NCBI GenBank assembly: GCA_047495785.1
Contig: JBLDXI010000042.1
Location: forward strand, 1,240,001-1,304,000
Reading direction: 5' to 3'
Length of the DNA: 64,000 nucleotides
Source: Lepidodermella squamata
Lineage: Eukaryota; Animalia; Gastrotricha
Shown here: positions 1 through 32,191 of the stretch, piece after piece
Numbering within the stretch: the first letter of the stretch is position 1
How the letters are laid out: the number at the start of each line of letters is the position of its first letter
The notes under the pieces: model-generated
Told to the model about the DNA's origin: nothing
Seen by the model: the letters and a program-made list of their open reading frames with translations, nothing else
Database searches by the model: none
Made by a program: the position numbers and the translations under genes

Positions 1-147
1 CTACCAAGTTGCAGATTTCATGCCTCCAAGTTTTCAACCACATTTTTAAGTCATCGGTTCAAATATTCGCAATCTCATTTCCATATGCACAGAAAAATTA
101 CATATAACAAAATAACAAAAACAATACTAAATTTTAAAGGAAAAAAA

Positions 148-226
148 TGTGTCGCGGCCGGGACTCGAACCCTCCATTAACTGCATTTCACAACGTTACA
201 CCGTAACCACTCGGCCGCACAACACA
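148..226 (-). pseudogene. tRNA-like / Pol III cassette (degenerate cloverleaf)
   Basis: Minus strand: TGTGTTGTGCGGCCGAGTGGTT...GAGGGTTCGAGTCCCGGCCGCGACACA followed by T7. A-box-like and B-box motifs with self-complementary ends; anticodon and T stems pair poorly. Confidence 0.6.
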
Positions 227-610
227 TCTGACTTATGCATTGCAAATCAATATAAAAATATTAGATGAGAAAAAGAAAAATCAAAAAAGTTTCCAGCTTC
301 TTCCGGGAATCGAACGCGTCTTAATCACTATATAGTTCGCTTCGCTTAGGCATTGGTTCGATTACTGCTCTCGTCACGTTTTTGCATTTCATTTTTTTCT
401 TCTTAACATTTCAAATCAGATTAATTCCTGTACAAATTTTTGCAGAATGAGCAATAAAACTCGAACGTTTACCATTCACGTGAATTTTCATGAGTACAAA
501 GTGCATGCCTGTCATATGGCCGACACGCGATTCACCATCAGCTGTTTCGCGGCGCAGCGGCGGCAACAGCAAGCAGACGGTTCGATCCGGTATTCAAGCT
601 TCATTCACAA

Positions 611-1225
611 CGATTTAATTGTCTTGAAAACAAGCTCTATTTCCTTAAACATTAGAATTACTTATGCTGCTAGCTACAATCAATCCATCTTCCGCTCGAA
701 TCGATAACAGTGTGACAATGCTGCTGGCTAAGGTTTGCTAGTATATTATTGCCAGTTCATATCACTTTTCTCACTTTTCCCATGATTACAGCTACTGGAT
801 GAAATGGCTATTTCAAAACTGTTGTCGCCTTTGGTTTTCCATGGTCACTACTTACTACCAGAAAGCGGTGAGTACATTTTTTTCCCCATTGATTTTATTT
901 ACTATAGTGAATTTATTACGATTTATTTCTCTTGAAAACAAGCTCTTATTCCCTGACCACTGAAATTGGTAATGCTGCCCGCGCTCAAATCATTCCATTT
1001 TCCACGATGAATCGTTGACAGCGTTACTTTTCTGCAGTCTCAGGTTTGCTAGTCTATGATTTCGAGTTCATTTCAATATTCCCATTATGATAAAGAAACT
1101 GGATCAAATGGTGATTTCGAAAGTGTTTCCGGCTTCGGTTGTCAACGAGCAATACTTACTCTCAGAAAACAGTGAGTACATTTTTTTCCTCATTAATTTT
1201 ATTTGTAGTAAATTTTATTGATTTT
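611..1225. repeat. Degenerate ~305-bp direct duplication (unit 1 only)
   Basis: CGATTTA.TT.TCTTGAAAACAAGCTCT at 611 and 919; AGGTTTGCTAGT at ~731 and ~1042; CAGAAA...GTGAGTACATTTTTT near 860 and 1163. Units 2-4 have a single copy. Confidence 0.8.
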
Positions 1226-1241
1226 TTTTCATTCATTAACA

Positions 1242-4200: not shown

Positions 4201-4282
4201 AGCAATCCCTGTCATTCAGTTGTACTTTAATAAATTTTTTTCAAGAATTTTTTCAAACTTTGAAATTCCAAACGAAGGTCGT
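1242..4282. repeat. 180-bp tandem satellite, type A, ~17 monomers
   Basis: Exact 180-bp period (AACGAGGGTC at 1391, 1571 ... 4091; final variant at 4271). Confidence 0.98.
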
Positions 4283-4537
4283 TGTTTAAAATTTTGGAAT
4301 ATTGGAATTTTCAATTCTTCATTTGCATTTAGTTGTATTTTCATGTCTTTTCTTATGTTTACCAGCTTGCGAATCGAATGACCGAATGATGCACCTGTGA
4401 AATGGCTGAAACCTGTCAAATCAAATGGCTGAAAACGATTTCAAGACGTGAAATTCATGTGATTTTTGATTTTTCAAACTAGTCCAGCTTTGATTCTTTA
4501 TATTGTAATTATATTGTTCCAAACCCCATTTTCGCCG

Positions 4538-4832
4538 ACCCAGGCAGTAATAGGGTAGAGATGCCGTCTCAATGCTCGGCTATGCAGTTAAATAGCCAAC
4601 CGACGTTGGAATAGTCGGTATAAACTTCCACCGTCCCGGCTCAGACGGCGAAAACGACCACGTCTTGGTGAGACGGTAAAAAAAACTCCGACAAGGCAAG
4701 GTCGGAAAAAAACTTCCAAAATGTCCGCAGGGCTGAGCGACCAGCGCCCTCACTGTGATTCGTCACAAATAACAAGCTGGAAGGGAACCTATGACGATCT
4801 GTCAGGCATCTTCGGATCCGAGGTTTCTCCCC
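4538..4832 (+). ncRNA. Candidate structured RNA (or ssDNA) element upstream of the transposase ATG (unit 1)
   Basis: About 12 nested stems, e.g. TGCCGTCTC/GAGACGGTA enclosing GGCTAT/ATAGCC, ACCGAC/GTCGGT, CCGTC/GACGG and ACCA/TGGT; TCCGAC/GTCGGA; CTTCCA/TGGAAG enclosing AGGGC/GCCCT and TGTGA-TTCG-TCACA; GAACCT/AGGTTT enclosing TGAC/GTCA and ATC-TTCG-GAT. Confidence 0.55.
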
Positions 4833-4983
4833 GATATTTCAATCATTGATGTGCATTTGTAATTTCAATAAAATATTTTTCAAATTTCACAATATATTTT
4901 TTAATTGATAATTCGCATATGATGTTATTATTTATTTTCCTAGTTTTTTTATGATGAGAATTTTATGATTATGAACTGGAATC

Positions 4984-7900
4984 ATGGTGAAACCGCCTAA
5001 TTGGAAGCCAAAATCGAAGGGACCGCGTAAATGTTCCTTTTGCAAACGGAAACGTGTTCAAATCTCAACCCACTGCGGACTAGTCAATTGCCCTAAAGCT
5101 AAAGGGCAACACCATCCCAAGCCATGCATTAAGGTTCAAGCTCCACCTTCTCAGTCCAATTGTAAGTTTTCCTAATCAATCAGTTATATATGTTTCATCT
5201 GTTTTTACACAGCCACGTCGTGTTCGCATGCTGGCGAATCTTTATCGCTAGCTCCATCCTCACTCGCTGTTCAGAATACGTCTGAGCAGTCGTTGATATC
5301 TCAAGGCTTGTTCTTGTTATTCATCCTCAAATTGTATAAATTTGCGATAAAATTTCCCCATAGGTAGCAGCGCTGTTCTGACTGCTTCGGAGCAATTGTT
5401 GGCTTCTCAAGGTCAGTAATCTTTATTTTTCAACTATAACTTGACATGTAGCTGTGCTTTTCCAGCTGTTCCGGCTACCCGGGAAGATCCGCTGCCACCT
5501 TCGGGTTAGTTGTTAGATTGAGATTTCTTTCATGTCTTCAGCGAATACCACTAAGCTCTTTTAAGAATTGAAGAGATGTTAACATATGATTGTTATGTCA
5601 TTCAGTCTTGTCAAATAATATCTTTTCAGGCGCTTCTTTGAACGATCGGCAGGAATCTAACGTTGGAGCGCCTGCAACACGTCAGCCAGTAACTCAGCCA
5701 TCTTGTCCAGTATGCGGCGCAATAGGGAGGAAGTATCTGACCCACTGCGACAATGAGGAATGCCGGATTAGTGGCCGCGGGCATCACGCTAATCCCTGTT
5801 TCCAGTTGGAACGACCCGGGCTCCAGGCCGGTATAAATCTTGAGCAGCAACGTAAGTATTATCCACCTGGTAACAACCTTTCATAAATAATGATTCATTT
5901 AGCTGTGGCGTCCTCTGGAGCTGTTGCTGCTACGTCAGAACGATCGCTGCCATCTATTGGTTAGTTATTTTATTCAATAATGTGCTGCCTGGTGTTAACT
6001 AAAACTGCTGTTTGTTGCAGCTAGTGGTTGTTCTTCTAATGCACCTATTCTATGTGACAACTGCAAAAGACGATCGGTGCCCTTTTTCGACATCGACATT
6101 GCTGCAGTCGAAGAGCCGGTATCTGGACGCAGCTATGGTGCTCTAACAGTGCGGCATGTCTACGAAAATTGTTCTCTGTGCCGTTGTTGTCGTCACTATT
6201 TGCGGAACGGCGATGCTCGTTTTCCCGCCGGATGGCCAGCTCTTGTTTACAGCCTCTTCTTTGAAGCATCAAATAGACATCTAGCTCAGGCCCTCTCGCA
6301 CTGCATCTCGCCGACCATGAAACTCATGTGGAGCGAGGCCGACGGCTCACGAGTTATGCGCGACTCCCAGCCCTGGTTTGTCGACAAGACGCGCGAGCTT
6401 GCTGATTTCATGGCCAATATTTACAGAGACGCCGGTATGCTACCTACCGATATGATTATTCGAATTGAATTGTTTTTCAATGCAGGGGGATTCAGTTACG
6501 CGCTGAACACCTACCCAGTGCCCGACGTGATATGCCCTCAAGGCTGCCTCGCGTTCATGGAGAAGTGCCAGCTTATCCCGTACCACCATTTCATCCAACA
6601 TGTTACTGGCAGCAATTTCTTCGATTCTGACTTGCGCTGGTTCGAGTCAAGGCGACCCGACTGGCCGTGCAACCCAGTGCCTTTCCTCGCTTGGGATTTC
6701 GCTGCTGCAATGGTCATGGACGAGAACAAGGGTCTATGCATTCTTGCCTGCATTGACCACAGCAAGCCTGACTTGTTTTCCATGTACCTGCATTTGCCTG
6801 TGAATCCCGAGTTTGATCGATTTCAAGATCCACAGCAGACCGAAATCTATGCACCCGTGCACGTGCAGCCGAATTTCGTGAGAGGAGGGCGCGTCGGTCA
6901 GTCCAACGCATCAGTGCCAGTGACGAAGACTGTCGGCGATCCGTTTGGGGTTGGTAGTTTTACTCTGCGTGGTGCCCACTCGGCAAACCGCAAGCCTCTC
7001 AGCATCTATGACAGTGCCTTCAAACCCCACCTTCTGGCCTTGCGATACCGCCCAGAGATTCGCAACACAGCAATCAGCAGATTCGGCGAGGAACACGTGG
7101 CTAACGTTCTTGCTGATTTCGATCAGCACTGCCCAACTGCTGTTGTCAGAAGCCACGTCAAGGGTGGCACTTTCATCGAATTAGCTGACTCCTTCTTCAC
7201 CTGGGCTGTTCGCCGTAAAATCGCAACAGGTTAGCAAATTTTCTTTCCGATGTTGGTTACTTTAAATTTAACATTTAAATATTCCTTTAAATTTAACATT
7301 TAAATTAAATTTATGCGGTGTCTCAAATGTTCAGATTTTAGTTTACTTTTTCTTATTTCAGGTACTGATTCGTCGAAAAAAGGGAAAGCGCCTTCAGAAG
7401 GCCTGATCTTCAATCCAGTTCACCCGAATGATGATCATGGCTTAATCCCTTGGGCGTTCAAGTCGAGTCGAGGTGATAACCCCAGTCAGCTCCTCACGCT
7501 TGTCGCCAACGTGGCGTTGTTGTGCAGGCCTGTGTACCGTGCTTCGTTGTCCCACCTGGTGCTTGGCAGTCCCGATTTAGCACGCGTCGACATCGGTGAC
7601 TTGCTCAGTCATACAGTTTCGCTGCCGCGCCCGAAAACCCCTCGTACTCTGAAGCTGTCGCACCTGGCAAGGGACTTCTGGGCACTGACTGAACCCGAAA
7701 GTGATAGCGGATCTGACGATGACGAAGAATCCCCCGATGTCGTTATTCGGGCATTAACCTTGATTGGGAGAATTACTGCGCCGATTAATGATGTCGAGTT
7801 GTCGTTTGGTGGATCTGATCTTTTGACGATCAGGAAGGGGCAAATGATGGATGGCGAAGGAAGGAGTCTCAGAAGTCATGGTGAGTGTTTTATTCATATT

Positions 7901-10900
7901 TTGGCAGTTTTTGTTGCAATATTATACTTGTTTGGTGATATCCAGCATGGTCTTGGGCTCTAAATTTCCAAATTTCCAAGTTTTAATCACAAATTGAGGG
8001 CTACCATGTAAGATTTAATGACGTAAATCTTCAAAAATTGAGTAATTCCCAAATGCTTTTATTCAGAACTTCATAACGCATGTTTATTTCGTCTTTTTGT
8101 TTTACAGTGGGCAGGGTTCTGGTCATGCACGAAGGTCGATCTCAGCTGCTGACCGAATTCCAGTCTTCGCGTGAGCTGCTGCTGTGCCGTCCTGAAGGTG
8201 CCTTGCCGATCAAATGGCCTGCATTGCCTTTGTCGCTGAAAGCTGGGCATCACCTTCTACTTGCCGGCGTCAAGTTTGGCTCGAAATCCTACATCGTTTT
8301 TCGATGGTCACCTAGCTTCAGTGGCTGGTGGACAGTAGAGCCTAGCGGACGAGTGGTTCGTGGTGTCAGCGATCAGCACATGCGCTCTGACGTCCAATTT
8401 GCGATTTACGCTCTGCCTGGCAACCAGACCTTCTGCAATCAGGCCGTGCGTCAATCGCTAGGTGGCCAGAGCAAGGCGGCATGCGAAATGCACTACGACT
8501 CCGTCGAGTTCAACTTCACCCTGATGAAAGTGCCTGCCAAGCATAAGGTGAAGTGTTGCTTGCGATTGCCGGGAAGAGCTAATCAATGCGGCAAACCTGC
8601 TCAGTTGCGTTGTCCTGCTGGCTTGCAGAATGGCAGCATGTCGTGCAGTGTCGGCATCTGCCCGCGGTGCTTCAAAAAGCTTTCAGCGAACAGCATCACC
8701 AAGCTCTCAGCACCCGACTTTCTGCCTGATTTGCCTGAAGATGCTGAACTGCAACTGTCAGCTAGTAGGGTATCCAACTTGGAAGCTGAAGTTGATGAGG
8801 TCTTGCCCCAGCCTGAGCAGCTTGATTTGGCTGCTGATATTCAATTTCCTCGAGGTGATGTAGAGCCGCTCTACGACCCCACCAAGGGGATTCTCGCGAA
8901 GTACCTCTGGCAGCACCTGGGAATTCTGCAGCGAACCAGGCTTGCTTTCGATTCTGCCCAAAAGTCCTTTCTTCTGCAACAAATGGTTGGTTTTGGTGAT
9001 GCGCCGGCAACATCTGTTTTGTTCCCAGAAGGTGCCTTGTTCCCGTCGCTTTTCTATTACCAACGAGATGGTAGTGTTGTTGGTGCTTTGCCTTACCACC
9101 ACTACTCGTCGAACGCATCAGGCTATACTAGTGGAATCGGCTCGCTGTCTGATCATGTTAAAGTGAGACTCCGCAACTTCTTGTTGGCAACAAGCTGGTC
9201 TTTTGCGTCGCTCTACTTTTCCTTTGACATGAAGTTATCGGCGCAGCTGAACAGAAATAGCACGGCAATTTTCATGAAGCGTGGGACAGAAGGCCTGGCG
9301 GGTAAAGGCGCTGTTGGCTGGTCTCCTCCTGGCACTGCTTTGGAATACGAGGAGTTCGACAAGGAGTCGAGACTAAAGGAACTTGGCGCTCTAATCAAGC
9401 ATGAAGAATGGAAGTGGTTCGGGACAATTACCTGCAATGATACAGGTTGGGAAACGTTTTAGTATTAACTAGGTATTAGATCGGTCGTCGCTTCGAACCC
9501 AAGCTCTCGTTCAAGATTTCTCCAATGATTTCTATAATCCATAGGCTTTCTTTCTCGGCGTTGACGTCATCAGCGACATTGATTTAACCTGTCAATGTTG
9601 TTCATTTGTACTCATAGTTGTACCCATTGCAGCATTAGTCAATTTGACATTTTTATTTTCTGAGAAATATAATTTGCTTCCTTTTATTCCCAGGGACACC
9701 GGGCGTATGTGAAATCGTTAAGGCCCTCATGATAAACGCTCAAAGGCACCATGGTCCACGCCCTGTTCTGTCGAAGGCCGACTATCAGCGAACTTTTCGT
9801 CAGCGTCTGCTCCTTGTTTCAAGGCTTGACGAGACCGAGTACAAGCGGCTGTACTACGCCCATTTCATCCTCATCAGCATGGCTTGGCAACGAGTGCAGG
9901 AGCATCTGATCGAGTTCCTGAAGCGCACGAATGTAGTTGGCACGGTCACCACTATTTTCGTCAGGAACGAATTTCAGAGCGAATCACTCGTTGGAAACAA
10001 AAGTCATCTGCATATGGGCATTTCAGTACGCGAAAGCCGGGCAGAACTGATGGAGAAAGTTTGCTGTGATCCTCGTGAATTCTTCTCGGAGCGGTACGGC
10101 ACGTCATTCGACGAGCTTCAGCGCTTGAGGTTGGTCGAGAGCCGGGATCACTTCGAGCTGCTCAAGGAGGTCCATTACCCTTTCCAACGTCACGAATGCG
10201 AGAAAGCGTTTTGGAAATGTCAAGTTCCACGCGGCGAAGGAGGGGAAATGGTTTGCCGAGTTCGCCAGCACGGCGTCTCCAGCAGCGGCTATTTTGAAGA
10301 ATTCCGCAACCTGTACTCCGAGGATACCCTGAAAGAGCTGCAATCCCTAGACCTCGCCAGAGAAGTGCCCAATCCCACTGGCGACTTTGACTGGGAATTT
10401 CTGGCTGATCAGCTCAAGTCGGGCGTGTACCACTACGCGATCAAGCATCTCGAGAAGGGAGTGAAGTTCATTCCGCAAATCCCGATCATCGCGGCAATGA
10501 TGGGCGGCTCCACGAACTTCCAGATTTGCGATTCTCATTTTAGCGTATCTTACCTGACGAGCTACGTTGCCAGCTCCGACGCTCGCCCTGAAGCTTACGC
10601 TGCAACGACAGATGTTCCGGGCCAGGTCGTTGCTTTGTTCCCTGCTGGTTTTGAGCGAGGTCAAAAGCTTGCTAGTGTGCGGTGAGTTTTATCTTTTCAG
10701 CGTTTATCGACCTAAAAAAACTTGCATATTTTTCAGAAAAGTGATGGAGGCAAAGCTGAAACACTTTCGTCGTGAAAGCATGCAAAGCTTCATCTTCATC
10801 GCCTTGACGGAAGTTGCATGGTTCGCGTTGAGTTTTCCCTACACCATCACAAACGTCGGTTTCGTTCACATCAACACGCACCCTCCAGCGTCGCGGCTGA

Positions 10901-13900
10901 TGTTGTGGCGACCGAAGCAAGCAGTGAAACGTAGACTTCCAGGTATGATTAATCTTACAATTAGTATATTTTCACATAATATTTCCCCAAATAGGAACTG
11001 ATGTCGCTGCTGTTGACCCAAACTACAATCGTCGGGGCTTGCCACAGTGGCGCTTATTCACGGAAGCGGTCATTCGCCTCATAATGAAGTTGAAAGGCAC
11101 GAATCTGCACGCCGGCCCTGTCGAGAAATTCGAAATTCGGCCTCCCGAGGCTCGTATCTTTGCCTCACCTGCTATCTACCACGCGGTGTTCGTCATTGAC
11201 CGAAAAAACTGGCGACCATACAACCCGATGGCCGATCCTTACATCCGCTTTTTCGACGGTTTCAAGCGGGAGGTCCGAATCAACGATTGCAGTTTGCGCA
11301 TCGCGCTCGACTATCTGGCTCAGCAGGACCAATCCAATGCAGCCGTTCAAGCACTCACGGAAATTTTCGAACTCTTGGTCGAAGGCGATCCTGTCTATGT
11401 TGACCGGTAACGATCTTTACGTTTTTTTAATTTCCGGAATATTTCAAATGTACGCTGAACTAGGTACTTGCACGTCACAAATAAGGCGGCGATAATTCCA
11501 GTCCTATCCACCATCTCTCCGCTCAACCGCTTCAACTTCTTGTATCACGTTGTCATGACGTTTGGTCGAATCGAAGATGAGGCTACTACCTTTCCGGCTG
11601 GGCATCTCCGGGCGGCATTTGTTCGATCGGGGCTCATTCGGGTCAATCCTGAAGGCGAGCCGACCAACCTTCCTGCCGACGTGAGGTCTCTGAAGCGTCG
11701 CGTCATTCTCGAAATCTTCGCTTTCCTGCCAATCGGTGTCAAGAGATTCGATTTTTACGTCGCCACTCTGAAATCCATGTTCGAGCAGTTTTTCTTTGGC
11801 GATGGAGGCACCGACAATCTCTCGGCACTGACTGACTGGGATGCGATTGAACGGGAAGTTGACGAGGATATTGTCCGAGCGGAAGGAGAAATGAAGCGGT
11901 CTGTGGTTGAGGTGACGCATTCGCAGCTTGTCGGGAAATTGCCGCTACCACCGCTGTCGGATTTCACTGACGCTACATCGTGTCAACCTTTGGAATGGAT
12001 TCCGAGTCTTCAACGACAACCAGGTCAGTCGGACCAGTCTTTCCAGGAGCAGCAGGCGGCTCTGGCTTTCGGTATGAAGACACTCGAACGCTTCCGAAGC
12101 AGAGCTAGCTTCAAGCACATCGCACTGGTTGGTCCTCCTGGGGCTGGAAAGACAACGCTGGCGCAGATCCTTGCCATGGTTGCCGTTTCTAAGGGACTAC
12201 GAGTTGTCATTACTGCTTTGACCTCGGAGCGAGCACGAGTTCTTGGCGGTCGGCACATCCACTTGCTTTTTCCTTTGCCGGTTAAGCAAATACCGTACAA
12301 AAATGTAATGGCGTATGCTGACGGCTGCCTCAAGAATCTGTGTTTCAAGACTACGCCGTCTGTTGTCCTATATCGGGCTGACGTCTTCATCATCGAAGAA
12401 ATTGGGCTGGTCTCTGCTGAAACCCTGGAAATCTTGGACACAGTTATGAGGAGTCTTACAGGTAAGCAAACCAGCATTTAATTATTACTGGTATTTATAG
12501 TTTTCGTTAGGAGTCGATGCGAAAATGGGTGGCAAATTGATCATTGCTACCGGGGACTTTGCTCAGCTCGAGACGATCAATGGTGAGAGTTGATTTATTG
12601 CAATACTAACATGTATATTGTATTTGTTTTTTTTAATTATCCCAGGTCGATCCTTTTGGGAATCAACACAATTGTACCTCAGCTACGACGTCGCATTGTT
12701 GAAACATTTCGTTCGGGCTGCCACTGACCCGCTACTCCAGCGGGTGCTGTTGATTTTGCGGCAAGGCGTTCTTGACGAGATTGACCGGGACTTCATCCTC
12801 AAAGCTGTGACTAGAACGTGCAACTTTTACGACACTTGGGACAACGTTCCGTTCCTTGTCCAGCGGATCGTCCCAACAAGAGAAGCTGAACAAGAGGTTA
12901 GTTGGAAACGGAAAATTTTGGTGATCACTCTTGCCTTTCATTAATTGATCAGGTCATTCGGAAGTTCCTGCAAGACGCTAGTCTCAGTGGCAAGACTTTG
13001 AAAACAGCTCTATGCATCGACGAAGTAAACACGCGTGGTGCCTGGGAACCTCTTCACCGTCCCGAATGGAAAAAAGCTATCAACAAACAGTCACTCAAGC
13101 CCGAGAACTTAACGCTCTTTGTTGGTGCTGTGGTTGCTATGACCTACAATCACGTAGCGTCGAACCCGCAACACTCCTTCTCCCAAGGGCAGCTAGCTTT
13201 GGTGACGCAGTTGCCGGAAGACATGGCAGCACCGGATGCCAAAATTTCTGTCCGCTTGGTTCCTCCAGGGCTGCGTGACATTGCACCAGATGAGGCTTGG
13301 CCAGAAATAAGTGTGGGCCGGCATCGGGACGATAACGTTGTTGTTGGCGACAACAAAACGCACCTGCGTCGTGTTCAGTTTCCGCTGCGGCATTACATTG
13401 CCTCGACTATTCATCGTGAGTGCTAACCTTGTTTTTATATTCAAGTATATAAAAATGTTAATTGTTTTCAGGAATCATGGGTTCTACCTGCGAGAACGGC
13501 GTTGCGGCCAAGATTTCTTCCAACGAGAAGGTACGTATTGCGAATAATAACTGTCGATATTGATATGTTCAATGTACTGTAATGAAGGGCTACGTGCTAT
13601 GGGAACGGGCGCAGCTTGCTGTCATTCTCTCGCGGTGCCGTTCACTTGACCGTGTGTCATTTGTTGGCGAACGCGCAGACATCACTGTGGCCATCGAAAG
13701 GCTGTTGATGGCAGTCGATGAGCCATACGAGGCTATCGTCGCATCGCTGCAAACGCTGGACGTGCTGCCTACCTCAACAGTCGCCAGTAACTGGTCAGCC
13801 CGACGACAGCAGCAGGTCAGCGACCCCGACGAACTGCCCGACATCACGTTCCGCGTTTTACGAACAACTTCCGGGTTAGTCCACTTACTTATTTGGCGCT

Positions 13901-14949
13901 TTGTATAGTCAACTCACTAATTGCGTATGTCCCATTATATATCGAGTCTTGACAGTTCACATTTCTATAACCATTTTATTATATTTCAAAATAGAATAAG
14001 TCGAACGTTTTCAAGAAAATTTTTCTTATAGATCATTCACGATCGAGCAGCTTGGCGATGCTCAAACTTCCATCCCATTGTAAGTATGGCATTGTTCATC
14101 TGCTTTATATACTATTCAAAACTTCTTCATAGGCCTGCAACCGTTGACCAGGCAAGCTCCTCCGATGCGCCTGTTGCGCCTGTCCCACGGTTAGTATAAC
14201 CTATCAATTCCTTTTCATTGCTTAAAATTCTGCTCAATTTATCAGAGTGCCGACATTGTTGGACTTCTACCGCGTCGTCGGTCCTGATTTGTCGGAACGC
14301 GAGCCCAATGGCGTCGTCTATCAATTGGTGGAGGTGGCTCAGCCGTGGGCCAGCTACTTTGGCGAAACCGAGCAAGCGCCTCTACAGCGACTTTATGACC
14401 ACAATCACAGTAAATACAAGAGAGACTAAAAAAATCGAACTGCTAACATTTGATTTCAGATGCAGGGGCCGCGATGACTCGCGGCAAGCAATGGCATTTG
14501 TACGCCGTCGCTCGTGGCTTGCCTGATGACGAAACCAGGTTGAACCTGGAGAAAAGGTGCCAGGACCTTATTACAGCGCAACCTGAGCTTTTGCCGTGGC
14601 AAGTTAGGACCAAATTTGAGTCCTACGTGGACGACATCAACGCTCGCCTGCATGGGTCCACTGCTGTAATTCGTTACGGCGAGTTGGACGAGGCTAAGGT
14701 TCACCGCCTGCGTATGATCTCCTTGTGAGTCAGCTGATGGATGTCATTCTTTTTACTCAATCCTTTCACTTTTCAGCACGTCGACAATTAGAGTAGCACC
14801 GGCGCCACCGTCAGCGCAAGAAGAAGCAGGTGAACTAATCGACCAAGATCCGCCCCCAAAGCGGTAAATAGATTTAAGTTCACATTTGCTTGTAGCTTTT
14901 TACTATTATTTTCAGAATTCATCTCGCAAATAATTGTTCGCCGTCTTGA
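4984..14949 (+). CDS. Spliced RepHel transposase, ~2,680 aa: tandem Cys/His fingers + HUH Rep + PIF1-like helicase + C-terminal GIY-YIG nuclease (unit 1)
   Basis: 25 hand-assembled exons: 4984-5161, 5213-5305, 5364-5411, 5466-5504, 5630-5851, 5903-5959, 6021-6434, 6486-7229, 7362-7880, 8108-9445, 9694-10681, 10737-10942, 10995-11406, 11464-12461, 12511-12582, 12646-12896, 12953-13415, 13472-13530, 13588-13874, 14032-14079, 14133-14189, 14246-14409, 14460-14724, 14777-14863, 14916-14949. Total 8,043 nt, phases compatible at every junction, no internal stop. All introns GT-AG except intron 2 (GC-AG). Splicing restores helicase motifs split across exons (MGGKLIIATGDFAQL; TIHRIMGST). Confidence 0.85.
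5032..5799 (+). other. Two N-terminal Cys/His putative zinc fingers (5032-5127 and 5704-5799)
   Basis: CSFCKRKRVQISTHCGLVNCPKAKGQHHPKPC and CPVCGAIGRKYLTHCDNEECRISGRGHHANPC share the exact spacing C-x2-C-x8-THC-x4-C-x6-HH-x2-PC. Confidence 0.7.
9415..10580 (+). other. HUH (Y2) Rep endonuclease domain
   Basis: Motif 1 WFGTITCN (Helitron FxTxTCN); motif 2 VRNEFQ...NKSHLHMGI (EFQ...HUH); QRHEC; motif 3 NFQICDSHFSVSYLTSYVAS (YxxxY). The upstream EGALFPSLFY resembles the conserved pre-Rep E..FP.LFP segment. Confidence 0.85.
12110..13670 (+). other. PIF1-like SF1B helicase domain (divergent)
   Basis: Walker A GPPGAGKT (12131-12154), ALTSERARVLGGRHIHLLF, Walker B-like FIIEEIGLVS, MGGKLIIATGDFAQL, LKHFVRAATDP, RVQFPLRHYIASTIHRIMGST, AQLAVILSRCRSL, all in PIF1 order. 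Confidence 0.9.
14307..14560 (+). other. SLX1-like GIY-YIG endonuclease domain (split by intron 14410-14459)
   Basis: Spliced sequence NGVVYQLVEVAQPWASYFGETEQAPLQRLYDHNHNAGAAMTRGKQWHLYAVARGLPDDETRLNLEKR matches the GIY...YIG.T...R...HN...GA..T....W......G........E pattern of SLX1/UPF0213-type nucleases. Confidence 0.75.
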
Positions 14950-15011
14950 TGTTTCTGCCGATCTTCCGATAAATGAAATGTTCCAATTCAATGTTTTTCC
15001 TAGTAGTAGCC

Positions 15012-15017
15012 AATAAA
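15012..15017 (+). promoter_or_regulatory. Putative polyadenylation signal
   Basis: AATAAA about 60 nt after the predicted stop, followed by T-rich sequence; present in all units. Confidence 0.5.
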
Positions 15018-15437
15018 CGTATCGCACTTTTTCTAATAGTGTTTATTGAATCAGAGTTATCAGATCGACTTGACTTAATATGAATCAAATCGCCACGAAA
15101 CCGTAATTTTTCTGATCCTTGTGCTTCGTCCATTATATAATTTTTCTAAAAGATTACCTAACCTCATTGCCATGCTCTTGGCTCTGTGGCAACCGAACCA
15201 TATTCATCTCACAAGTTGGCACTATAGTTGCTTCCGGAACCCACCATAAAGATGACAGATCTTAGTTTCAAGTTTTTCCATTGCATCACCATTGCTAAAT
15301 CAAAATCCATCAAATAAAAATGCTTCCCTGCGTAAATCTATAATTTCAAATCTTAATCACGGAAAATAGGGTTTATATCAAATCAAATCAAACCCAAAGC
15401 ACTGATGAGAATATCAAATTTCAAATGTCATTAACAC

Positions 15438-15620
15438 TGGGGTGAGGGGGAGCCACCGTCCCCTCCAACGACGTGGAGGGGATCTCCAAGGGGTGGTTCG
15501 AGTCCTTACCCATTACCCAGGAGAGTGGAGAAAAAGAAAGAAAAGGCTAGCGCAGCGTAAGCCTTGTCGAACTCTCCTGGATGGGGGCGCGACTCTGGGA
15601 GTTCCGAAGGAACGCCAGTT
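15438..15620 (+). other. Downstream multi-hairpin block (also at 30436-30612, 45429-45607, 60604-60775)
   Basis: Nested stems GGGTGAGG/CCTTACCC, GAGCCACC/GGTGGTTC, TCCCCTCCA/TGGAGGGGA; then CCAGGAGAGT/ACTCTCCTGG enclosing AAGGCT/AGCCTT; then GTTCC-GAA-GGAAC. Contains the B-box-like GGTTCGAGTCC. Confidence 0.65.
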
Positions 15621-15949
15621 CCTTTACACGTGTTTTACACATACGCCGTAGATTACCACGAACGAAGTGAGATTTCATCCCAACAGGGGGGCCCGAGAAC
15701 GCGTTGGTTAACAGGACATTCTCCGATGAAGCCGCCCGATTTATGGTAGTATCCTGGACCCCTCAGGACCTCCCAGAAACTTTTTCAGCTCTAACGGACC
15801 TTCCGTTGATTTTCTAGAAATTAGGACGGTTTTTTCCTATTTTACCGTATTTTTTGGTCACGTGACCCGGAATGGGTAGTATATGAGGGGACAGTAGGAG
15901 GATATGATAAGGACACCAAAAAACTAACCACGCTAACCAGAGTATCCAA

Positions 15950-15992
15950 GCCAGCTGACAGGCTGGCCCCTCGCCCCTGGGGGAGAGGGGCC
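15950..15992. other. GC-rich double hairpin, candidate subterminal signal (in every unit and at 61107-61149)
   Basis: GCCAGC-6-GCTGGC overlapping GGCCCCTC...GAGGGGCC. All 43 nt are invariant in the otherwise diverged copy at 61107. Confidence 0.6.
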
Positions 15993-16407
15993 TACAATAA
16001 ATCAACAATGCTAGCTGGCGACCAAAGAGCAAACGACGAAAAGGCAATATACGTAAAAGTCAAGGTCAATTGAACAATTCTGCGGCGAATAAATTGTGCA
16101 TTTTCCATATACAACAATAGGTTTACATGTAATCGACAACGGAGAATCCGAATATGACGTTCATTTTGTTATGAAGCAATTATAACCCAATGATAGCCCC
16201 TCCAACTAATTTTTCTGTTCACTGCTATGGAGTTGGCATGGTTATATTTTTTATTAAATAACATAATGCAGTTCAAGTTTCAGGGCTCGAAGTTTTAAAG
16301 CACATTTTTAAGTGAGCGGTTCAATAACGCACTGTCTTATTTCCATATTCATATGCATGCGCAGAAACAAAAAAAAATAATAATAACAATAAAAAATTAA
16401 AAGAAAA

Positions 16408-16484
16408 TGTGTCGCGGCCGGGACTCGAACCCTCCATTAACTGCATTTCACAACGTTACACTGAAACCACTCGGCCACAACACA
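16408..16484 (-). pseudogene. tRNA-like / Pol III cassette (unit 2)
   Basis: Minus strand A box TGGCCGAGTGG, B box GGTTCGAGTCC, then TTTTCTTTT. Confidence 0.6.
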
Positions 16485-17199
16485 TCTGACATATCCATCG
16501 CAAATTAAATTTCAATTAAATATTCAACGAAATTATCAAAACAGTTTCCAGCGCCTTCCGGGAATCGGACGCGTCTCTATATAATTTATTCACTATATAA
16601 TTCGCTACGCAGTGGTTCGGAAGGCAGTGGTTCGATTGCTGCTCACATCACATTTTTCCTTCTCATTTTTTCTTCTTAAAATCAGATTTATTTCTGTTTA
16701 ATTTTTTTGCAGAGTGAGCAATAAAAAATAAACGTTTACCATTCACGTGAATCTTCATGAGTACAAAGTGCATGCCTGTCATATGGCCGACACGCGATTC
16801 AGCATCAGCTGTTTCACGGCGCAGCGGCGGCAACAGCAAGCAGACGGTTCGATCCGGTATTCAACCATCATTCACAACGATTTATTTCTCTTCAAAACAA
16901 CCTCTATTTCCCTAATCATTAGAATTACTTATGCTGCCAGCTCCTATCAATCTATCTTCCGCTCGAATCGATAACATTGTGACAATGTTGCTCTCTCAGG
17001 TTTGCTAGTATATTATTCCCAGTTCATATCACCATTCCCACTATAATTACAGCTACTGGATGAAATGGCGATTTCAACACTGTTGTCCACTTTGGTTTTC
17101 CATGGTCACTACTCCCTACCAGAAAGCGGTGAGTACATTATTTTCCTCATTCATTTTTTTTACTATTGTAAAATTTATTGATTTTTTCATTCATTAACA

Positions 17200-19158
17200 C
17201 GTTTTTTTTGCTCCCCAATATTTTCTTTCGTCGTTATGCTCCCGTATTCGACGTTTTCGCCATCAGCAACGTCGATTCCACTAATTCATGTCATTTAATT
17301 TTACCCTGATTTACTTTTTTCAAGAATTTTTTCAAACTTTGAAATTCCAAACCAAGGTCGTAGGTTGGTGCCCGACCTCTCATTTTTTCGCCCTCAAATA
17401 TTTTCTTTCATCGATATGCTCCCGTTCTCGACGTTTTCGCCATCAGCAACGTCGATTCCACTAATTCATGTCAATTAATTTTACCCTGATTTACTTTTTT
17501 CAAGAATTTTTTCAAACTTTGAAATTCCAAACCAAGGTCGTAGGTTGGTGCCCGACCTCTCATTTTTTCGCCCTCAAATATTTTCTTTCATCGATATGCT
17601 CCCGTTCTCGACGTTTTCGCCATCAGCAACGTCGATTCCACTAATTCATGTCAATTAATTTTACCCTGATTTACTTTTTTCAAGAATTTTTTCAAACTTT
17701 GAAATTCCAAACCAAGGTCGTAGGTTGGTGCCCGACCTCTCATTTTTTCGCCCTCAAATATTTTCTTTCATCGATATGCTCCCGTTCTCGACGTTTTCGC
17801 CATCAGCAACGTCGATTCCACTAATTCATGTCAATTAATTTTACCCTGATTTACTTTTTTCAAGAATTTTTTCAAACTTTGAAATTCCAAACCAAGGTCG
17901 TAGGTTGGTGCCCGACCTCTCATTTTTTCGCCCTCAAATATTTTCTTTCATCGATATGCTCCCGTTCTCGACGTTTTCGCCATCAGCAACGTCGATTCCA
18001 CTAATTCATGTCAATTAATTTTACCCTGATTTACTTTTTTCAAGAATTTTTTCTAACTTTGAAATTCCAAACCAAGGTCGTAGGTTGGTGCCCGACCTCT
18101 CATTTTTTCGCCCTCAAATATTTTCTTTCATCGATATGCTCCCGTTCTCGACGTTTTCGCCATCAGCAACGTCGATTCCACTAATTCATGTCAATTAATT
18201 TTACCCTGATTTACTTTTTTCAAGAATTTTTTCAAACTTTGAAATTCCAAACCAAGGTCGTAGGTTGGTGCCCGACCTCTCATTTTTTCGCCCTCAAATA
18301 TTTTCTTTCATCGATATGCTCCCGTTCTCGACGTTTTCGCCATCAGCAACGTCGATTCCACTAATTCATGTCAATTAATTTTACCCTGATTAACTTTTTT
18401 CAAGAATTTTTTCAAACTTTGAAATCCCAAACCAAGGTCGTAGGTTGGTGCCCGACCTCTCATTTTTCGCCCTCAAATATTTTCTTTCATCGATATGCTC
18501 CCGTTCTCGACGTTTTCGCCATCAGCAACGTCGATTCCACTAATTCATGTCAATTAATTTTACCCTGATTTACTTTTTTCAAGAATTTTTTCAAACTTTG
18601 AAATTCCAAACCAAGGTCGTAGGTTGGTGCCCGACCTCTCATTTTTTCGCCCTCAAATATTTTCTTTCATCGATATGCTCCCGTTCTCGACGTTTTCGCC
18701 ATCAGCAACGTCGATTCCACTAATTCATGTAAATTAATTCTACCCTGATTTACTTTTTTCAAGAATTTTTTCAAACTTTGAAATCCCAAACCAAGGTCGT
18801 AGGTTGGTGCCCGACCTCTCATTTTTTCGCCCTCAAATATTTTCTTTCATCGATATGCTCCCGTTCTCGACGTTTTCGCCATCAGCAACGTCGATTCCAC
18901 TAATTCATGTCAATTAATTTTACCCTGATTTACTTTTTTCAAGAATTTTTTCAAACTTTGAAATCCCAAACCAAGGTCGTAGGTTGGTGCCCGACCTCTC
19001 ATTTTTTCGCCCTCAAATATTTTCTTTCATCGATATGCTCCCGTTCTCGAAGTTTTCGCCATCAGCAACGTCGATTCCACTAATTCATGTCAATTAATTT
19101 TACCCTGATTTACTTTTTTCAAGAATTTTTTCAAACTTTGAAATTCCAAACGAAGGTC
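17200..19158. repeat. 180-bp tandem satellite, type B, ~11 monomers
   Basis: 180-bp period (one 179-bp monomer). About 84% identical to type A with no indels. Confidence 0.98.
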
Positions 19159-19404
19159 ATTTTTTTGAATTTTAGAATTTCGGAAATTTATATTAGCATT
19201 TCATTTTTTTTTATTTTTTCTCTTTTTTACCAGTTTGCGAATCGAATGACCGATGTTGCACATGCTGTAATCAAATGGCTGAAAACGATTTCAAGACGAA
19301 GTGATTTGTGATTTTTCAAACGTGCTACTTCATTTGAACGTTGTTTACCAGCTTTGCTGTATGATGCTTTTTAAATTATATTGTTCCAAACCCCATTTTC
19401 GCTG

Positions 19405-19699
19405 ACCCAGGCAGTAATAGGGTAGAGATGCCGTCTCAATGCCCGGCTATGCAGTTAAATAGCCAACCGACGTTGGAATAGTCGGTATAAACTTCCACCG
19501 TCCCGGCTCAGACGGCGAAAACGACCACGTCTTGGTGAGACGGTAAAAAAAACTCCGACAAGGCAAGGTCGGTAAAAAACTTCCAAAATGTCCGCAGGGC
19601 TGAGCGACCAGCGCCCTCACTGTGATTCGTCACAAATACTAAGCTGGAAGGGAACCTATGACGATCTGTCAGGCATCTTCGGATCCGAGGTTTCTCCCC
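19405..19699 (+). ncRNA. Candidate structured element (unit 2)
   Basis: About 5 substitutions versus unit 1 in and next to the block, almost all in unpaired linkers. Confidence 0.55.
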
Positions 19700-19858
19700 G
19701 ATATTTCAATTATTGATGTGCATTGGTAATTTCAATAAAATATGTTTTTCATTTCAATATATTTTTTTTAATTGATGTTCTTCATTCCATTCGCATATGG
19801 TGTTATTTTTTATTTATCTAGTTTTATGATGACAATTTTGTGATTATGAACTGGAATC

Positions 19859-22800
19859 ATGGTGAAACCGCCTAATTGGAAGCCAAAATCGAAGGGATCG
19901 CGTAAGTGTTCCTTTTGCAAACGGAAAGGTGTTCGAATCTCAACCCACTGCGGACTACTCAATTGCTCTAAAGCTAAAGGGCAACACCATCCCAAGCCGT
20001 GCATTAAGGTTCAACCTCCACAGTCCGCTTCTCAGTCCAATTGTATGTTTTCCTAATCAATCAGTTATATATGTTTCATCTGTTTTTACACAGCCACGTC
20101 GTGTTCGCATGTTGGCGAATCTTTATCGGTAGCTCCATCCTCACTCACTGTTCAGAATACGTCTCAGCAGTCGTTGATATCTCAAGGCTTGTTCTTGTTA
20201 TTCATCCTCAAATTGTATAAATTTGCGATAAAATTTCCCCATAGGTAGCGGCGCTGTTCTGACTGCTTCGGAGCAATTGTTGGATTCTCAAGGTCAGTAA
20301 TTTTTATTTCTCAACTATAACTTGACATGTGGCTGTGCCGTTCCAGCTGTTCCGGCTACCCGGGAAGATCCGCTGCCACCTCCGGGTTAGTTGTTAGATT
20401 GAGATTTATTTCATGTCTTGAGCGAATACCACTAAGCTCTTTTAAGAATTATAAGAATTGAAGAGGTGTTAACATATGATTGTTATGTCATTTAGTCTTG
20501 TCAAATAATATTTTCAGGCGCTTCTTTGAACGAACGGCAGGAATCTAGCGCGCCTGCAACACGTCAGCCAGTAACTCAGCCATCTTGTCCAGTATGCGGC
20601 GCAAAAGGCAGGAAGTATCTGACCCACTGCGACAATGAGGAATGCCGGATTAGTGGCCGCGGGCATCACGCTAATCCCTGTTTCCAGTTGGAACGACCCG
20701 GGCTACAGGCCGGTGTAAATCTTGAGCAGCAACGTAAGTATTATCCACCGGGTAACAACCTTTCATAAATAATGATTCATTTAGCTGTGGCGTCCTCTGG
20801 AGCTGTTGCTGCTACGTCACAACGGTCGCTGCCATCTATAGGTTAGTTATTTAATCAAGAATTGTGCTGCCTGGTGTTAACTAAAACTGCTGTTTGTTGC
20901 AGCTAGTGGTGGTTCTTCTAATGCACCTATTCTATGTGACAACTGCAGAAGACGATCGGTGCCCTTTTTCGACATCGACATTGCTGTCGTGGAAGAGCCG
21001 GTATCTGGACGCAGCTATGGTGCTCTAGGACTAAGGAAAGTCTATGAAAACTGCTCGTTATGCCGTTGTTGCCGTCACTATTTGCGCAACGGCGATGCTC
21101 GTTTTCCCGCCGGATGGCCAGCCCTTGTTTATAGCCTTTTCTTCAAAGCAGCGAATAGGCACCTAGCAGAGGCCCTCTCTAACTACATATCGCCGCTCAT
21201 GAAAATGATGTGGAGCGAGGTCGACGGCTCAAATGTTATGCGGGACTCGCAGCCGTGTTTCGTTGACAAGACACGTGATCTGGCTGATTTCATGGCCAAT
21301 ATCTACAAAGACGCAGGTATTCTATCAACCTACTAAATGAGTATACGAATGCAGTTTTTTTTTTAATTGCAGGAGGATTCAGTTACGCGCTAAACATGTA
21401 CCCAGTGCCCGACGTGATATGTCCGCAAGGTTGCCTCGCTTTCATGGAGAAGTGCCAGCTAATCCCGTACCATCATTTGATCCAACATGTCACTGGCAGC
21501 AATTTCTTCGATTCCGACTTGCGCTGGTTCGAGTCAAGGAGACCCGACTGGCCGTGCAACCCAGTGCCTTTCCTCGCTTGGGATTTCGCTGCTGCAATGG
21601 TCATGGACGAGACAAAGGGCCTATGCATCCTTGCCTGCATTGACCACAGCAAGCCGGACCTGTTTTCCATGTACCTGCATCTCCCTGCGAATCCCGAGTT
21701 CGACCGGTTCCACGATCCGCAGCAGACCGAAATCTATGCACCCGTGCACGTGCAGCCCAATTTCGTCAGAGGCGGGCGAGTCGGTCAGTCGAACGCATCA
21801 GTGCCAGTGACAAAAACTCTGGGTGATCAATTAGGTGTCGGCAGCTTTACATTGCGTGGTGCTCACTCGGCAAATCGCAAGGCTTTGAGCATGTACGCCA
21901 GCGCCTTTAAGCCACACCTTTTGGCCTTGCGATATCGTCCTGAGATTCGCAACACCGCGATCAGCAGATTTGGCGAGGAACACGTGGCTCACGTTCTTGC
22001 TGATTTTGATCAGCATTGCCCAACTGCTGTCGTGAGAAACCATGTCAAGGGTGGCACTTTCATCGAGCTAGCTGACTGTTACTTCACCTGGGCTATTCGC
22101 CGCAAAATCGCGACAGGTCAGTACATTTCATTCTTAATCTACTACTATAGATTAGACTCAACAGAATTAGCACTGCATTAATTTTGCTGATAGTGATAGC
22201 CTTGTAATCGGGCCCTGCACTGAATTTTAGATGCGTTTTGTCCAATATAAAATTCTCCAATATAAATGGTCAAAGAACGGATGTAGCAACTGTAGTAGAG
22301 TATCGCGCGGGATAACCACTGCAAATTATTATGTAGTGTACTTCGGGAGGATAAGATTAGGCCGATCGAACTGCTCCAAATTCTCGATATAATAAACAAA
22401 TATAGAGATACTAAGATTCAAGCGCATTAACAATTCATCATCGATTCCTACGAATTGTCTCATTTCGTCCTTCTTTATTTTAGGAAGTGATTCGTCGAAA
22501 AAAGGGAAAACACCTTCAGAAGCCGTGATCTTCAATCCGGTTCACCCGAACGATGATCATGGCTTAATCCCCTGGGCGTTCAAGTCGGGTCAAGGCGACA
22601 ACCCTAGTCAGCTCCTGACACTGGTTGCCAACGTCGTTTCGTTGTGCCGCCCTGTGTACCGTGCGGCGTTGAGTCATCTAGTGCTTGGCAGTCCCGATTT
22701 AACACGCGTCGACATCGGTGACTTGCTCAGTCATACTGTTTCGCTGCCGCGCCCGAAAACCCCTCGTACTCTGAATTTGTCGCATCTGGCAAGGGACTTC

Positions 22801-25800
22801 TGGTCACTGACAGAACCCGAAAGTGATAGCGGATCTGACGATGACGAAGAATCCCCCGATGTCGTTACGCGGGCATTAACTTTGATTGGGAGAGTTACTG
22901 CGCCGATTAATGATGTCGAGTTGTCGTTTGCTGGATCTCATCTTTTAGCGATAAGAAAGGGGCAAACCATGGACGGCGAAAGAAGGAGTCTCCGAAGTCA
23001 TGGTGAGTGTTTTATTCATATTTTGGCAATTATTGCTGCATTATTAGACGTTGTGGTGATACATATCATGATCTTGGGTCCTGAATTTCAAAATTTACTG
23101 GTTTTAATCAAAAATTGAAACAACAAAAAATTGAGGGCTCCCATTCAAGTTATAATGACGTAAATCTTGAAATATTGAGTAATTTTCAAATCGTTTGATT
23201 CATACCTAGATAACCCTTGTTTATTTCGTGTTGACAGTGGGTAGGGTGCTGGTCATCCACGGAGGTCAATCTCAGCTGCTGACCGAATACCAGACTTCGC
23301 ATGAGCTGCTGATGTGCCGACCCGAAGGTGCCTTGCCGATCAATTGGCCCGCATTGCCCTTGTCGCTGAAAGCTGGTCATCACCTGCTACTTGCCCGCGT
23401 CAAGTTTGGCTCGAAATCCTACATCGTTTTTCGATGGTCGCCTAGCTTCAGTGGCTGGTGGACAGTAGAGCCTAGCGGGCGAGTGGTTCGTGGTGTCAGT
23501 GATCAGCACATGCGCTCTGACGTCCAATTTGCGATTTACGCTCTGCCTGGCAACCAGACGTTCTGCAATCAAGCCGTCCGTCAATCGCTCGGTGGTCAAA
23601 GCAAGGCTGCCTGCGAAATGCATTTCGACTCTGTCGAGTTCAACTTCACTCTTATGAAAGTGCCGGTGAAACATAAGGTGAAGTGTTGCATGCGATCACC
23701 GGGAAGAGCCAATCAATGCGGCAAACCTGCTCAGTTGCGCTGTCCTGCGGGCTTGCAGAATGGCAGCTTGTCGTGCAGTGTCGGCATCTGCACGCGGTGC
23801 TTCAAGAAGCTTCCAGCGGACGGTATCACCAAGCTCTCAGCGCCTGACTTTCTGCCTGATGTGCCTGAAGATGCTGAATTGCAACTGTCAGCTAGCAGGG
23901 CATCGAACTTGGAAGCTCAAGCCGACGAGGTTCCGCCGCAGCCTGAGCAGCTTCATTTGGCTACTGATATTCAATTTCCTCGAGGCGATGCTGAGCCGCT
24001 GTATGATCCGACCAAGGGTATTCTCGCCAAGTATCTCTGGCAGCACTTGGGAATTCTGCAGCGAACCAGGCTCGCTTTCGATTCTGCCCAGAAGTCTTTT
24101 CTACTGCAGCAGATGGTTGCCTTCGGAGATGCCCCTGCTACTTCCATCTTGTACCCGGAGGGTGCTCTGTTTCCGTCACTTTTCTATTGCCAACGTGATG
24201 GCAGTGTTGTTGGTGCTTTGCCTCACCATCACTACTCGTCCTACAACTCCGACTATACAGGTGGAATCGGCTCCCTGTCTGATCATGTCAAAGTCAGGTT
24301 GCGCAACTTCTTCTTGGCAACAAGCTGGTCGTTTGCGTCAATCTACTTCTCCTTTGACATGAAGCTATCGGCGCAGCTGAACAAAAACAGCACTGCAATC
24401 TTCATGAAGCGTGGGACAGAAGGCCTGGCAGGTAAAGGCGCTGTTGGCTGGTCTCCTCCTGGCACGGCTCTCGAATACGAGGAGTTCGACAAGGAGTCGA
24501 GGCTGAAAGAGCTTGGCGCCCTAATCAAGCATGAAGAATGGAAGTGGTTCGGGACAATTACTTGTAATGATACAGGTTAGCACAAGTTTTGGTATTCAAT
24601 CTCACTCAATTGTAGACTGAATAATTTCTCCAAGAATTGTTTGAAATTTGAAATTTTACCACCTCGACCTACACAATGCATTATTTTTCAATTCCAGGCA
24701 CACCTGGTGTATGTGAAATCGTCAAAGCCCTTATGATAAACGCTCAAAGGCACCATGGTCCACGCCCTGTTCTGTCGAAGGCCGACTATCAGCGAACTTT
24801 TCGTCAGCGTCTGCTCCTTGTTTCAAGGCTTGACGAGACCGAGTACAAGCGGCTGTACTACGCCCATTTCATCCTCATCAGCATGGCTTGGCAACGAGTG
24901 CAGGAGCATCTGATCGAGTTCCTGAAGCGCACGAATGTTGTTGGCACTGTCACCACTATTTTCGTCAGGAACGAATTTCAGAGCGAATCACTCGTTGGCA
25001 ACAAAAGTCATCTGCATATGGGCATTTCAGTACGCGAAAGCCGGGCAGAACTGCTGGAGAAAGTTTGCTGTGATCCTCGTGAATTCTTCTCGGAGCGGTA
25101 CGGCACGTCATTCGACGAGCTTCAGCGCTTGAGGTTGGTCGAGAGCCGAGATCACTTCGAGCTGCTCAAGGAGGTCCATTACCCCTTCCAACGTCACGAA
25201 TGCGAGAAAGCGTTTTGGAAATGTCAAGTTCCACGCGGCGAAGGAGGGGAAATGGTTTGCCGAGTTCGCCAGCACGGCGTCTCCAGCAGCGGCTATTTCG
25301 AAGAATTCCGCAACGTGTACTCCGAGGATACCCTGAAAGAGCTGCAATCCCTAGACCTCGCCAGAGAAGTGCCCAATCCCACTGGCGACTTTGACTGGGA
25401 ATTTCTGGCTGATCAGCTCAAGTCGGGCGTGTACCACTACGCGATCAAGCATCTCGAGAAGGGCGTGAAGTTCATTCCGCAAATCCCGATCATCGCGGCA
25501 ATGATGGGCGGCTCCACGAACTTTCAGATATGCGATTCTCATTTCAGCGTATCTTACCTGACGAGCTACGTTGCCAGCTCCGACGCTCGCCCTGAAGCTT
25601 ACGCTGCAACGACAGATGTTCCGGGCCAAGTCGTTGCTTTGTTCCCTGCTGGTTTTGAGCGAGGTCAAAAGCTTGCTAGTGTTCGGTGAGTAATATCTTT
25701 GCACTTCAATTGACTTGAAAAACTTTGATGTTTTTAGGAAAGTGATGGAAGCGAAGCTGAAGCATTTCCGTCGAGAAAGCATGCAGAGCTTTATCTTCAT

Positions 25801-31399: not shown

Positions 31400-31476
31400 T
31401 GTGTCGCGGCCGGGACTCGAACCCTCCATTAACTGCATTTCACAACGTTACACTGAAACCACTCGGCCACAACACA
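31400..31476 (-). pseudogene. tRNA-like / Pol III cassette (unit 3)
   Basis: Same sequence as the unit 2 copy. Confidence 0.6.
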
Positions 31477-32191
31477 TCTGACATATCCATCGCAAATTAA
31501 ATTTCAATTAAATATTCAACGAAATTATCAAAACAGTTTCCAGCGCCTTCCGGGAATCGGACGCGTCTCTATATAATTTATTCACTATATAATTCGCTAC
31601 GCAGTGGTTCGGAAGGCAGTGGTTCGATTGCTGCTCACATCACATTTTTCCTTCTCATTTTTTCTTCTTAAAATCAGATTTATTTCTGTTTAATTTTTTT
31701 GCAGAGTGAGCAATAAAAAATAAACGTTTACCATTCACGTGAATCTTCATGAGTACAAAGTGCATGCCTGTCATATGGCCGACACGCGATTCAGCATCAG
31801 CTGTTTCACGGCGCAGCGGCGGCAACAGCAAGCAGACGGTTCGATCCGGTATTCAACCATCATTCACAACGATTTATTTCTCTTCAAAACAACCTCTATT
31901 TCCCTAATCATTAGAATTACTTATGCTGCCAGCTCCTATCAATCTATCTTCCGCTCGAATCGATAACATTGTGACAATGTTGCTCTCTCAGGTTTGCTAG
32001 TATATTATTCCCAGTTCATATCACCATTCCCACTATAATTACAGCTACTGGATGAAATGGCGATTTCAACACTGTTGTCCACTTTGGTTTTCCATGGTCA
32101 CTACTCCCTACCAGAAAGCGGTGAGTACATTATTTTCCTCATTCATTTTTTTTACTATTGTAAAATTTATTGATTTTTTCATTCATTAACA

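Follow-up and report, generated by a model that had tools for sequence, protein, structure and literature searches.

The 64,000-nt window of Lepidodermella squamata DNA analysed here (assembly GCA_047495785.1, contig JBLDXI010000042.1, positions 1,240,001–1,304,000 of the forward strand; coordinates below are those of the window) encodes a Helitron-like HUH-Rep/Pif1 transposase whose last folded domain is a GIY-YIG nuclease of the SLX1 lineage. This identification draws on splicing, reading frame, homology and fold. The gene is genuine and intact, and it belongs to a variant of Helitron-like transposon on which very little has been published. In the literature searched, Repbase aside, a single sentence on HelenSM92 of Sphagnum magellanicum (HELIANO) was the only link found between a Helitron-like element and a GIY-YIG domain (PMC11417382). 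No paper was found that unites Slx1, GIY-YIG, helicase and rolling-circle transposon, and the 'new class' paper on Paramecium contains no GIY-YIG.

Gene structure, splicing and tandem copies

The window is an intron-rich eukaryotic stretch in which each unit of a tandem array carries one long plus-strand gene (Table 1). Two sequencing runs bear on its exons. Run X1 (2015) is probably RNA, a type that was guessed, and covers mostly the 3′ part of the gene; run X2 is deep and covers the whole stretch. X1 contigs skip 13875–14031, 14080–14132, 14190–14245, 14410–14459, 14725–14776 and 14864–14915. Four helicase-region introns, including 12462–12510, 12897–12952 and 13531–13587, are among the X1 joints. 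None of these intron joints is among the joints listed for X2.

Table 1. Positions of the array, the transposase gene and its domains in the window
Feature	Position	Strand	Basis and remarks
Array of four ~15.0-kb units in head-to-tail order, with a 180-bp satellite inside each one	1..61367	+	Copy identities given in the text
Whole transposase gene, copy 1 (25 exons, 2,680 aa)	4984..14949	+	Open frame; 5′ exons modelled only, GC-AG intron 5306–5363 assumed
HUH Rep exon with two-His and two-Tyr (Y2) motifs	9694..10681	+	Motifs aligned with relatives; family profile against Helraiser 7LCC, E 0.0016
Pif1-like SF1B helicase exons, Walker A near 12135	11464..13874	+	Pfam AAA_30 4e-8, PIF1 2e-4
Micro-exon, 48 nt; part of a linker insertion of ~70 aa that relatives lack	14032..14079	+	Spliced in X1
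Micro-exon, 57 nt; Pro/Ala/Ser-rich linker	14133..14189	+	X1 joints, frame
Exon, 164 nt; linker end and first half of GIY-YIG	14246..14409	+	hhalign to relatives' domain 91%, E 9e-7; joints on both sides
Intron splitting the domain, 50 nt, GT-AG, phase 1	14410..14459	+	Skipped in X1 contig, depth 13, matching loose ends; sites kept in all four copies
Exon, 265 nt; second half of domain, helices to about 14647	14460..14724	+	hhalign 58%, E 1e-4
Last two coding exons; low-complexity tail of about 40 aa and stop	14777..14863, 14916..14949	+	Flanking introns spliced in X1; frame
Same two GIY-YIG exons, copy 2	29244..29722	+	Offset +14,998
Same two GIY-YIG exons, copy 3	44237..44715	+	Offset +29,991
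Same two GIY-YIG exons, copy 4	59412..59890	+	Offset +45,166

The earlier note had read a GIY-YIG nuclease across two exons after removal of the intron between them, and the X1 joint, the GT..AG borders and the conservation of both sites confirm that this intron is spliced. Both GIY-YIG exons and both micro-exons are bounded by GT..AG, and no stop interrupts the frame between the helicase exon at 11465 and the stop codon at 14947–14949. The nuclease exons join the helicase in frame through the micro-exons as claimed, on the evidence of the X1 joints and the open frame, but the length originally given for the second does not extend to copies 2–4 or the RNA, where a 6-nt in-frame deletion reduces it to 51 nt. 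The C-terminal position also needs qualification: homology ends near 14647, and two further spliced exons follow the last folded domain. Every step from helicase to nuclease has an X1 joint, in contigs from which a single transcript is not provable.

A separate downstream gene was considered and ruled out, as the splice joints tie the nuclease exons to the helicase. The stop codon at 14726–14728 lies inside a spliced intron. Opposite-strand joints at 12253/12363 and 14547/14655 in X1 contigs are most likely fold-back artefacts of the library.

The stretch between helicase and nuclease is longer here than in relatives. It spans about 86 aa, compared with 14 aa in the relative P0028, and the distance from Walker A to the domain is 537 aa versus 459–497 aa. 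The micro-exons supply 35 of the extra linker residues (33 in copies 2–4), and they fall in the least confident loop of the helicase-plus-domain model of a relative. From these alignments, the micro-exons encode half of a lineage-specific insertion rather than a conserved feature.

Upstream, the open frame requires the GC-AG intron, and its GC donor is retained in all four copies. The region 4984–9445 encodes the N-terminal ~1,200 residues, among which several Cys/His clusters occur; its exons from 6021 onwards have conserved counterparts in relatives but match no named Pfam family, and some relatives carry an OTU domain. The last helicase exon matches the end of the family helicase at 97.7%, and a model of the family helicase folds like Pif1.

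Copies 2–4 are mutually 99–100% identical. Copy 1 shares about 85–92% identity with them over its 5′ portion, rising to 99% over the 3′ portion, with a switch near 11300 and a 98% patch near 9800, while copy 4 diverges over its last kilobase, after about 60500. The tandem copies stem from at least two subfamilies that are about 87% alike, and they are mosaic at both ends, a pattern read from the alignments as subfamily recombination at both array edges. The transposase frame is open in all four copies, the splice sites are conserved in copies 2–4, and pN/pS across the copies is 0.08–0.2 by region. The two nuclease exons contain four substitutions among the copies (three silent, one replacement), a number too small to reveal whether selection acts on the domain.

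These data also bear on whether the locus could be a domesticated host repair gene, or an amplified host locus, rather than a mobile element. Its 25 exons, apparent transcription and purifying selection, together with the lack of demonstrated element ends, would be compatible with a host gene. Selection and introns are, however, usual in Helitrons. Four tandem mosaic copies from divergent subfamilies, intact HUH/Y2 motifs, and relatives that are patchy, multi-copy and often intron-free make a host gene very improbable.

The search for element ends yielded the tandem copies and two candidate hairpins, in a window that contains one array edge only. Canonical Helitrons (HLE1) begin with 5′-TC and end with hairpin-CTRR-3′. 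The two GC-rich hairpins, at 15965–15992 and 15452–15499 (z about −2), lie 3′ of the gene and are candidate terminator or end signals; the first is identical in copy 4, where similarity of the flanking sequence is about 88%. A CTAG about 18 nt past this hairpin reads CAAG in copy 4, and similarity continues beyond it.

Other parts of the array can be described briefly. The 180-bp satellite occupies 1242–4282, 17203–19158, 32195–34151 and 47190–49326, with 11–17 repeats per array; repeats of one array are 97–98% identical, and those of copy 1 are 84% identical to those of the other copies. Exon-like pieces with good splice signals lie upstream of the satellite at 16950–17135 (and at 698–900 and 1009–1204), and may belong to another small gene or represent 5′ exons. 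A minus-strand stretch at 16404–16480 (also at 143–220) looks tRNA-like by eye, with a B-box-like motif; neither ARAGORN nor Rfam made a call. The flank at 61300–64000 holds degenerate copies of the last ~100 bp of the unit and of the satellite unit, and is probably an older related element.

Identity of the nuclease domain

GIY-YIG nucleases are defined by a two-tyrosine hairpin, followed by a conserved arginine and a metal-binding glutamate (PMC9071465). Exon-wise alignment to the family columns places all of these marks in the window copy, with codons starting at 14319 (Tyr), 14355 (Tyr), 14361 (Gly), 14388 (Arg), 14400 (His), 14403 (Asn), 14492 (Trp) and 14549 (Glu). The residues named in the earlier note, namely both tyrosines, the arginine, the His-Asn pair and the glutamate, are therefore in place, and the spacing of Arg, His and Glu equals that in SLX1.

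Using a profile built from relatives only, the two exon pieces took the first two places (14.5 and 9.3 bits) among 337 segments from the six-frame translation of the unit, where the next segment scored 2.5 bits; when each exon was shuffled 2,000 times, no shuffle matched its real score. Together with the exon-wise hhalign matches, this supports the proposed division of the domain over two exons, and the ranking and shuffles rule out a chance motif. The exons also align to the C-terminal domain of the relatives in the correct order. Neither exon on its own matches Pfam, PDB sequence searches with single exons found nothing, and a word-based homologue search with a single exon was blank or weak. 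Feature matches to GIY-YIG in the ESM Atlas, at 0.89 for the first exon, serve as a lead only.

The Pfam and fold evidence comes from intron-free relatives and from exon-by-exon matches, the exons having been joined only for the frame check and the substitution counts. Pfam GIY-YIG (PF01541) was found in 19 of 30 relatives' domains, with a best value of 2e-11. For the family-domain profile, the best PDB matches were all SLX1/HIGLE (E 6e-12 to 1e-8), and bacterial UPF0213 reached only 1e-4. A model of the P0028 domain (pLDDT 96) gave 11 significant Foldseek matches, all of them SLX1/HIGLE. VIA superposition of this model agrees with the SLX1-type label first applied to the window domain: Z values were 11.6, 11.4 and 10.6 for SLX1/HIGLE, 5.0 for I-TevI, and 5.0 or less for other GIY-YIG proteins. 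The window domain is accordingly predicted to have the GIY-YIG fold, carried over by homology from the P0028 model, and sequence profile and modelled structure both place it in the SLX1 lineage, with SLX1/HIGLE as nearer matches than UvrC, I-TevI or restriction enzymes.

SLX1 and At-HIGLE are the closest solved matches in both sequence and structure, including a helix and a strand beyond the minimal core. They share the Tyr-Tyr-Arg-His-Glu set at equal spacing and the Trp strand that follows the His-Asn loop. Unlike them, the window domain is the C-terminal part of a 2,680-aa transposase and has no known SLX4 partner. Orthodox SLX1 carries a C-terminal RING finger (PMC1564403, PMC4407285). The residues after the window domain contain no Cys/His cluster and have no Pfam match, so there is no RING. 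Capture of a whole SLX1 gene is ruled out by the absence of the RING and by the family-wide position of the domain.

Residues that bind DNA at sites I and II have been described in Cg-Slx1 (PMC4407285). By alignment-inferred mapping, the window copy has Gln, Tyr and Asp at the positions of Cg-Slx1 Arg35, Arg38 and Gln39, and Asp, Asn, Lys and Asp at those of Arg72, Gln77, His80 and His84, so that most site I/II residues appear to be replaced. The Arg preceding the catalytic Arg is retained in many relatives. Because the RING is missing and most DNA-binding residues differ in this copy, the domain is best classed from its sequence as SLX1-lineage but not orthodox SLX1. Since the site I/II residues differ, the substrate range of SLX1 cannot be assumed here.

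When proteins related to the domain but standing alone were sought, three were returned, at least two of which resemble family fragments. SLX1-like GIY-YIG proteins of giant viruses (Nucleocytoviricota) match the fold as well as SLX1 does (Pithovirus, Terrestrivirus and Klosneuvirus, E 1e-6 to 5e-5); they differ in being stand-alone genes with predicted structures and putative function.

The transposase family and its placement among Helitron-like elements

A search with the Rep exon gave 122 relatives, and a second search added more; 61 are complete past the helicase. The window protein and its relatives carry Helitron-type HUH and Y2 Rep motifs, then a Pif1-like helicase, in one ORF. The GIY-YIG-type domain follows in 60 of the 61 complete relatives, 459–497 aa after Walker A. 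Because nearly all carry the domain at near-constant spacing, the fusion is ancestral to this large family, and the comparison indicates that GIY-YIG is fixed throughout this transposase family and nothing special to the window copy.

The named hosts are an ostracod (Cyprideis torosa), a tunicate (Styela clava) and a hagfish (Myxine glutinosa), and most members come from metagenome contigs. Closer relatives were sought in metagenome and viral contigs and none was found; a narrow search of viral contigs for related RepHel proteins likewise found none. One relative, L002 1–28436 on a 723-kb contig, lies head-to-tail with diverged copies in units of about 18–21 kb, each of which also holds two accessory ORFs (190 and 326 aa).

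The domain order resembles that of Helentrons (HLE2 with an AP endonuclease), which also have an HUH-Y2 Rep, a Pif1-like helicase and a second nuclease fused behind the helicase; an OTU domain, again as in Helentrons, occurs in some relatives. In Helentron P0161, PIF1 spans residues 2341–2542 and Exo_endo_phos spans 2821–3015. No AP endonuclease was found after the helicase in the window family, where GIY-YIG occupies that slot. DUF6570 is a marker of HLE2. It is present in P0161 and P0163 and absent from the family proteins scanned (P0001, P0003, P0008, P0028 and P0167) and from the window exons; it is also absent from the HLE2-like outgroup P0162, hence its absence is not decisive.

Family members score below 1e-111 to each other, and a real Helentron scores E 1e-7 over 15% of RepHel. 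A quick unrooted helicase tree, with long branches and built with HLE1 and the window protein left out, puts the family and three HLE2-type proteins on opposite sides of one branch (SH-aLRT 98). From these comparisons, the family is likely a clade separate from HLE2. It shares its Rep motifs and helicase fold with canonical Helitrons (HLE1, Helraiser) but differs in having a second nuclease and a very remote sequence (Table 1). HelenSM92, which can be compared with the window family by description only, was assigned to HLE2; it has terminal inverted repeats, shows TT insertion and was treated as a single capture.

A broader proposal, which is tentative and held with less than even confidence, is that these elements form an undescribed major clade apart from HLE1 and HLE2. 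Such a clade would be defined by an ancestral helicase-fused SLX1-lineage nuclease that resolves the element's own branched intermediates without SLX4, favouring head-to-tail spread.

Proposed role of the nuclease in transposition

Helitron transposition generates forks, displaced strands and circles (PMC5876387). SLX1 and HIGLE cleave branched DNA, but not plain duplex or single strands (PMC4407285, PMC9071465). As transposition makes branched DNA and SLX1-lineage enzymes cut it, branch trimming is the simplest role for the domain. By analogy, it is proposed, with about an even chance of being correct, that the helicase-tethered nuclease trims branched intermediates. Rep would make and join the strand breaks, and the helicase would drive strand displacement. 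The tethered nuclease would then clip branched DNA beside the helicase, namely flaps of displaced strand, D-loops or junctions, whether at the donor, within multimeric circles or where the element inserts. The outcome would be an element that is less dependent on host resolvases.

The full Tyr-Tyr-Arg-His-Glu set, retained in the window copy, is found in 35 of 60 relatives, including the deepest branches. The remaining 25 are without part of it, through at least four losses on well-supported branches; these relatives still have long ORFs and keep the HUH/Y2 motifs. No second nuclease is needed for Helraiser (HLE1) to transpose (PMC5876387). Because Helraiser moves without one, and because relatives that lost part of the catalytic set keep their Rep motifs intact, the nuclease is an accessory, useful enough to have been kept active in many lineages but not needed for core chemistry.

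The same losses raise the question of whether the domain is mainly non-catalytic, capping the helicase or binding branched DNA, with cutting incidental or vestigial. The domain itself persists in relatives that have lost part of its catalytic set, and its best-kept residues include Asn, Pro and Ser of the fold rather than Arg/Glu. In addition, a relative's helicase and domain modelled as one unit (pTM 0.90) are confidently predicted to dock in a fixed pose. However, retention of all five catalytic residues by more than half of the relatives, with an overall identity of 25–35%, needs selection on catalysis there, and the ~70-aa linker insertion in the window copy also counts against this reading. 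A mainly non-catalytic module is thus unlikely.

The nuclease could instead nick the target site, opening it for strand transfer. GIY-YIG enzymes nick the target in Penelope elements, and the same is often supposed for the AP endonuclease of Helentrons. The domain occupies the same slot as the endonuclease of P0161, and the head-to-tail arrays here and in L002 could reflect insertion beside earlier copies. Nevertheless, SLX1-lineage enzymes do not cut plain duplex, and an essential targeting step is hard to reconcile with a catalytic set that has been lost repeatedly. What the Helentron endonuclease does has itself yet to be established (PMC8788227). Target nicking therefore seems rather improbable, and trimming of branched intermediates is the preferred role.

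It is not settled how Helitrons complete integration or what the additional nuclease contributes in Helentrons (PMC8788227, PMC5876387). Tandem arrays of Helitrons are known (PMC5876387). Here a nuclease has been recruited a second time, independently, to the slot that the AP endonuclease holds in Helentrons, and the element that carries it is intact and apparently transcribed. The occurrence of naturally active and naturally dead variants within one family makes the role of the extra nuclease testable. The domain is also a marker of a widespread RepHel family, the named public proteins of which are annotated as uncharacterised or as helicase, and it may supply a structure-selective nuclease, of putative activity, that is independent of SLX4.
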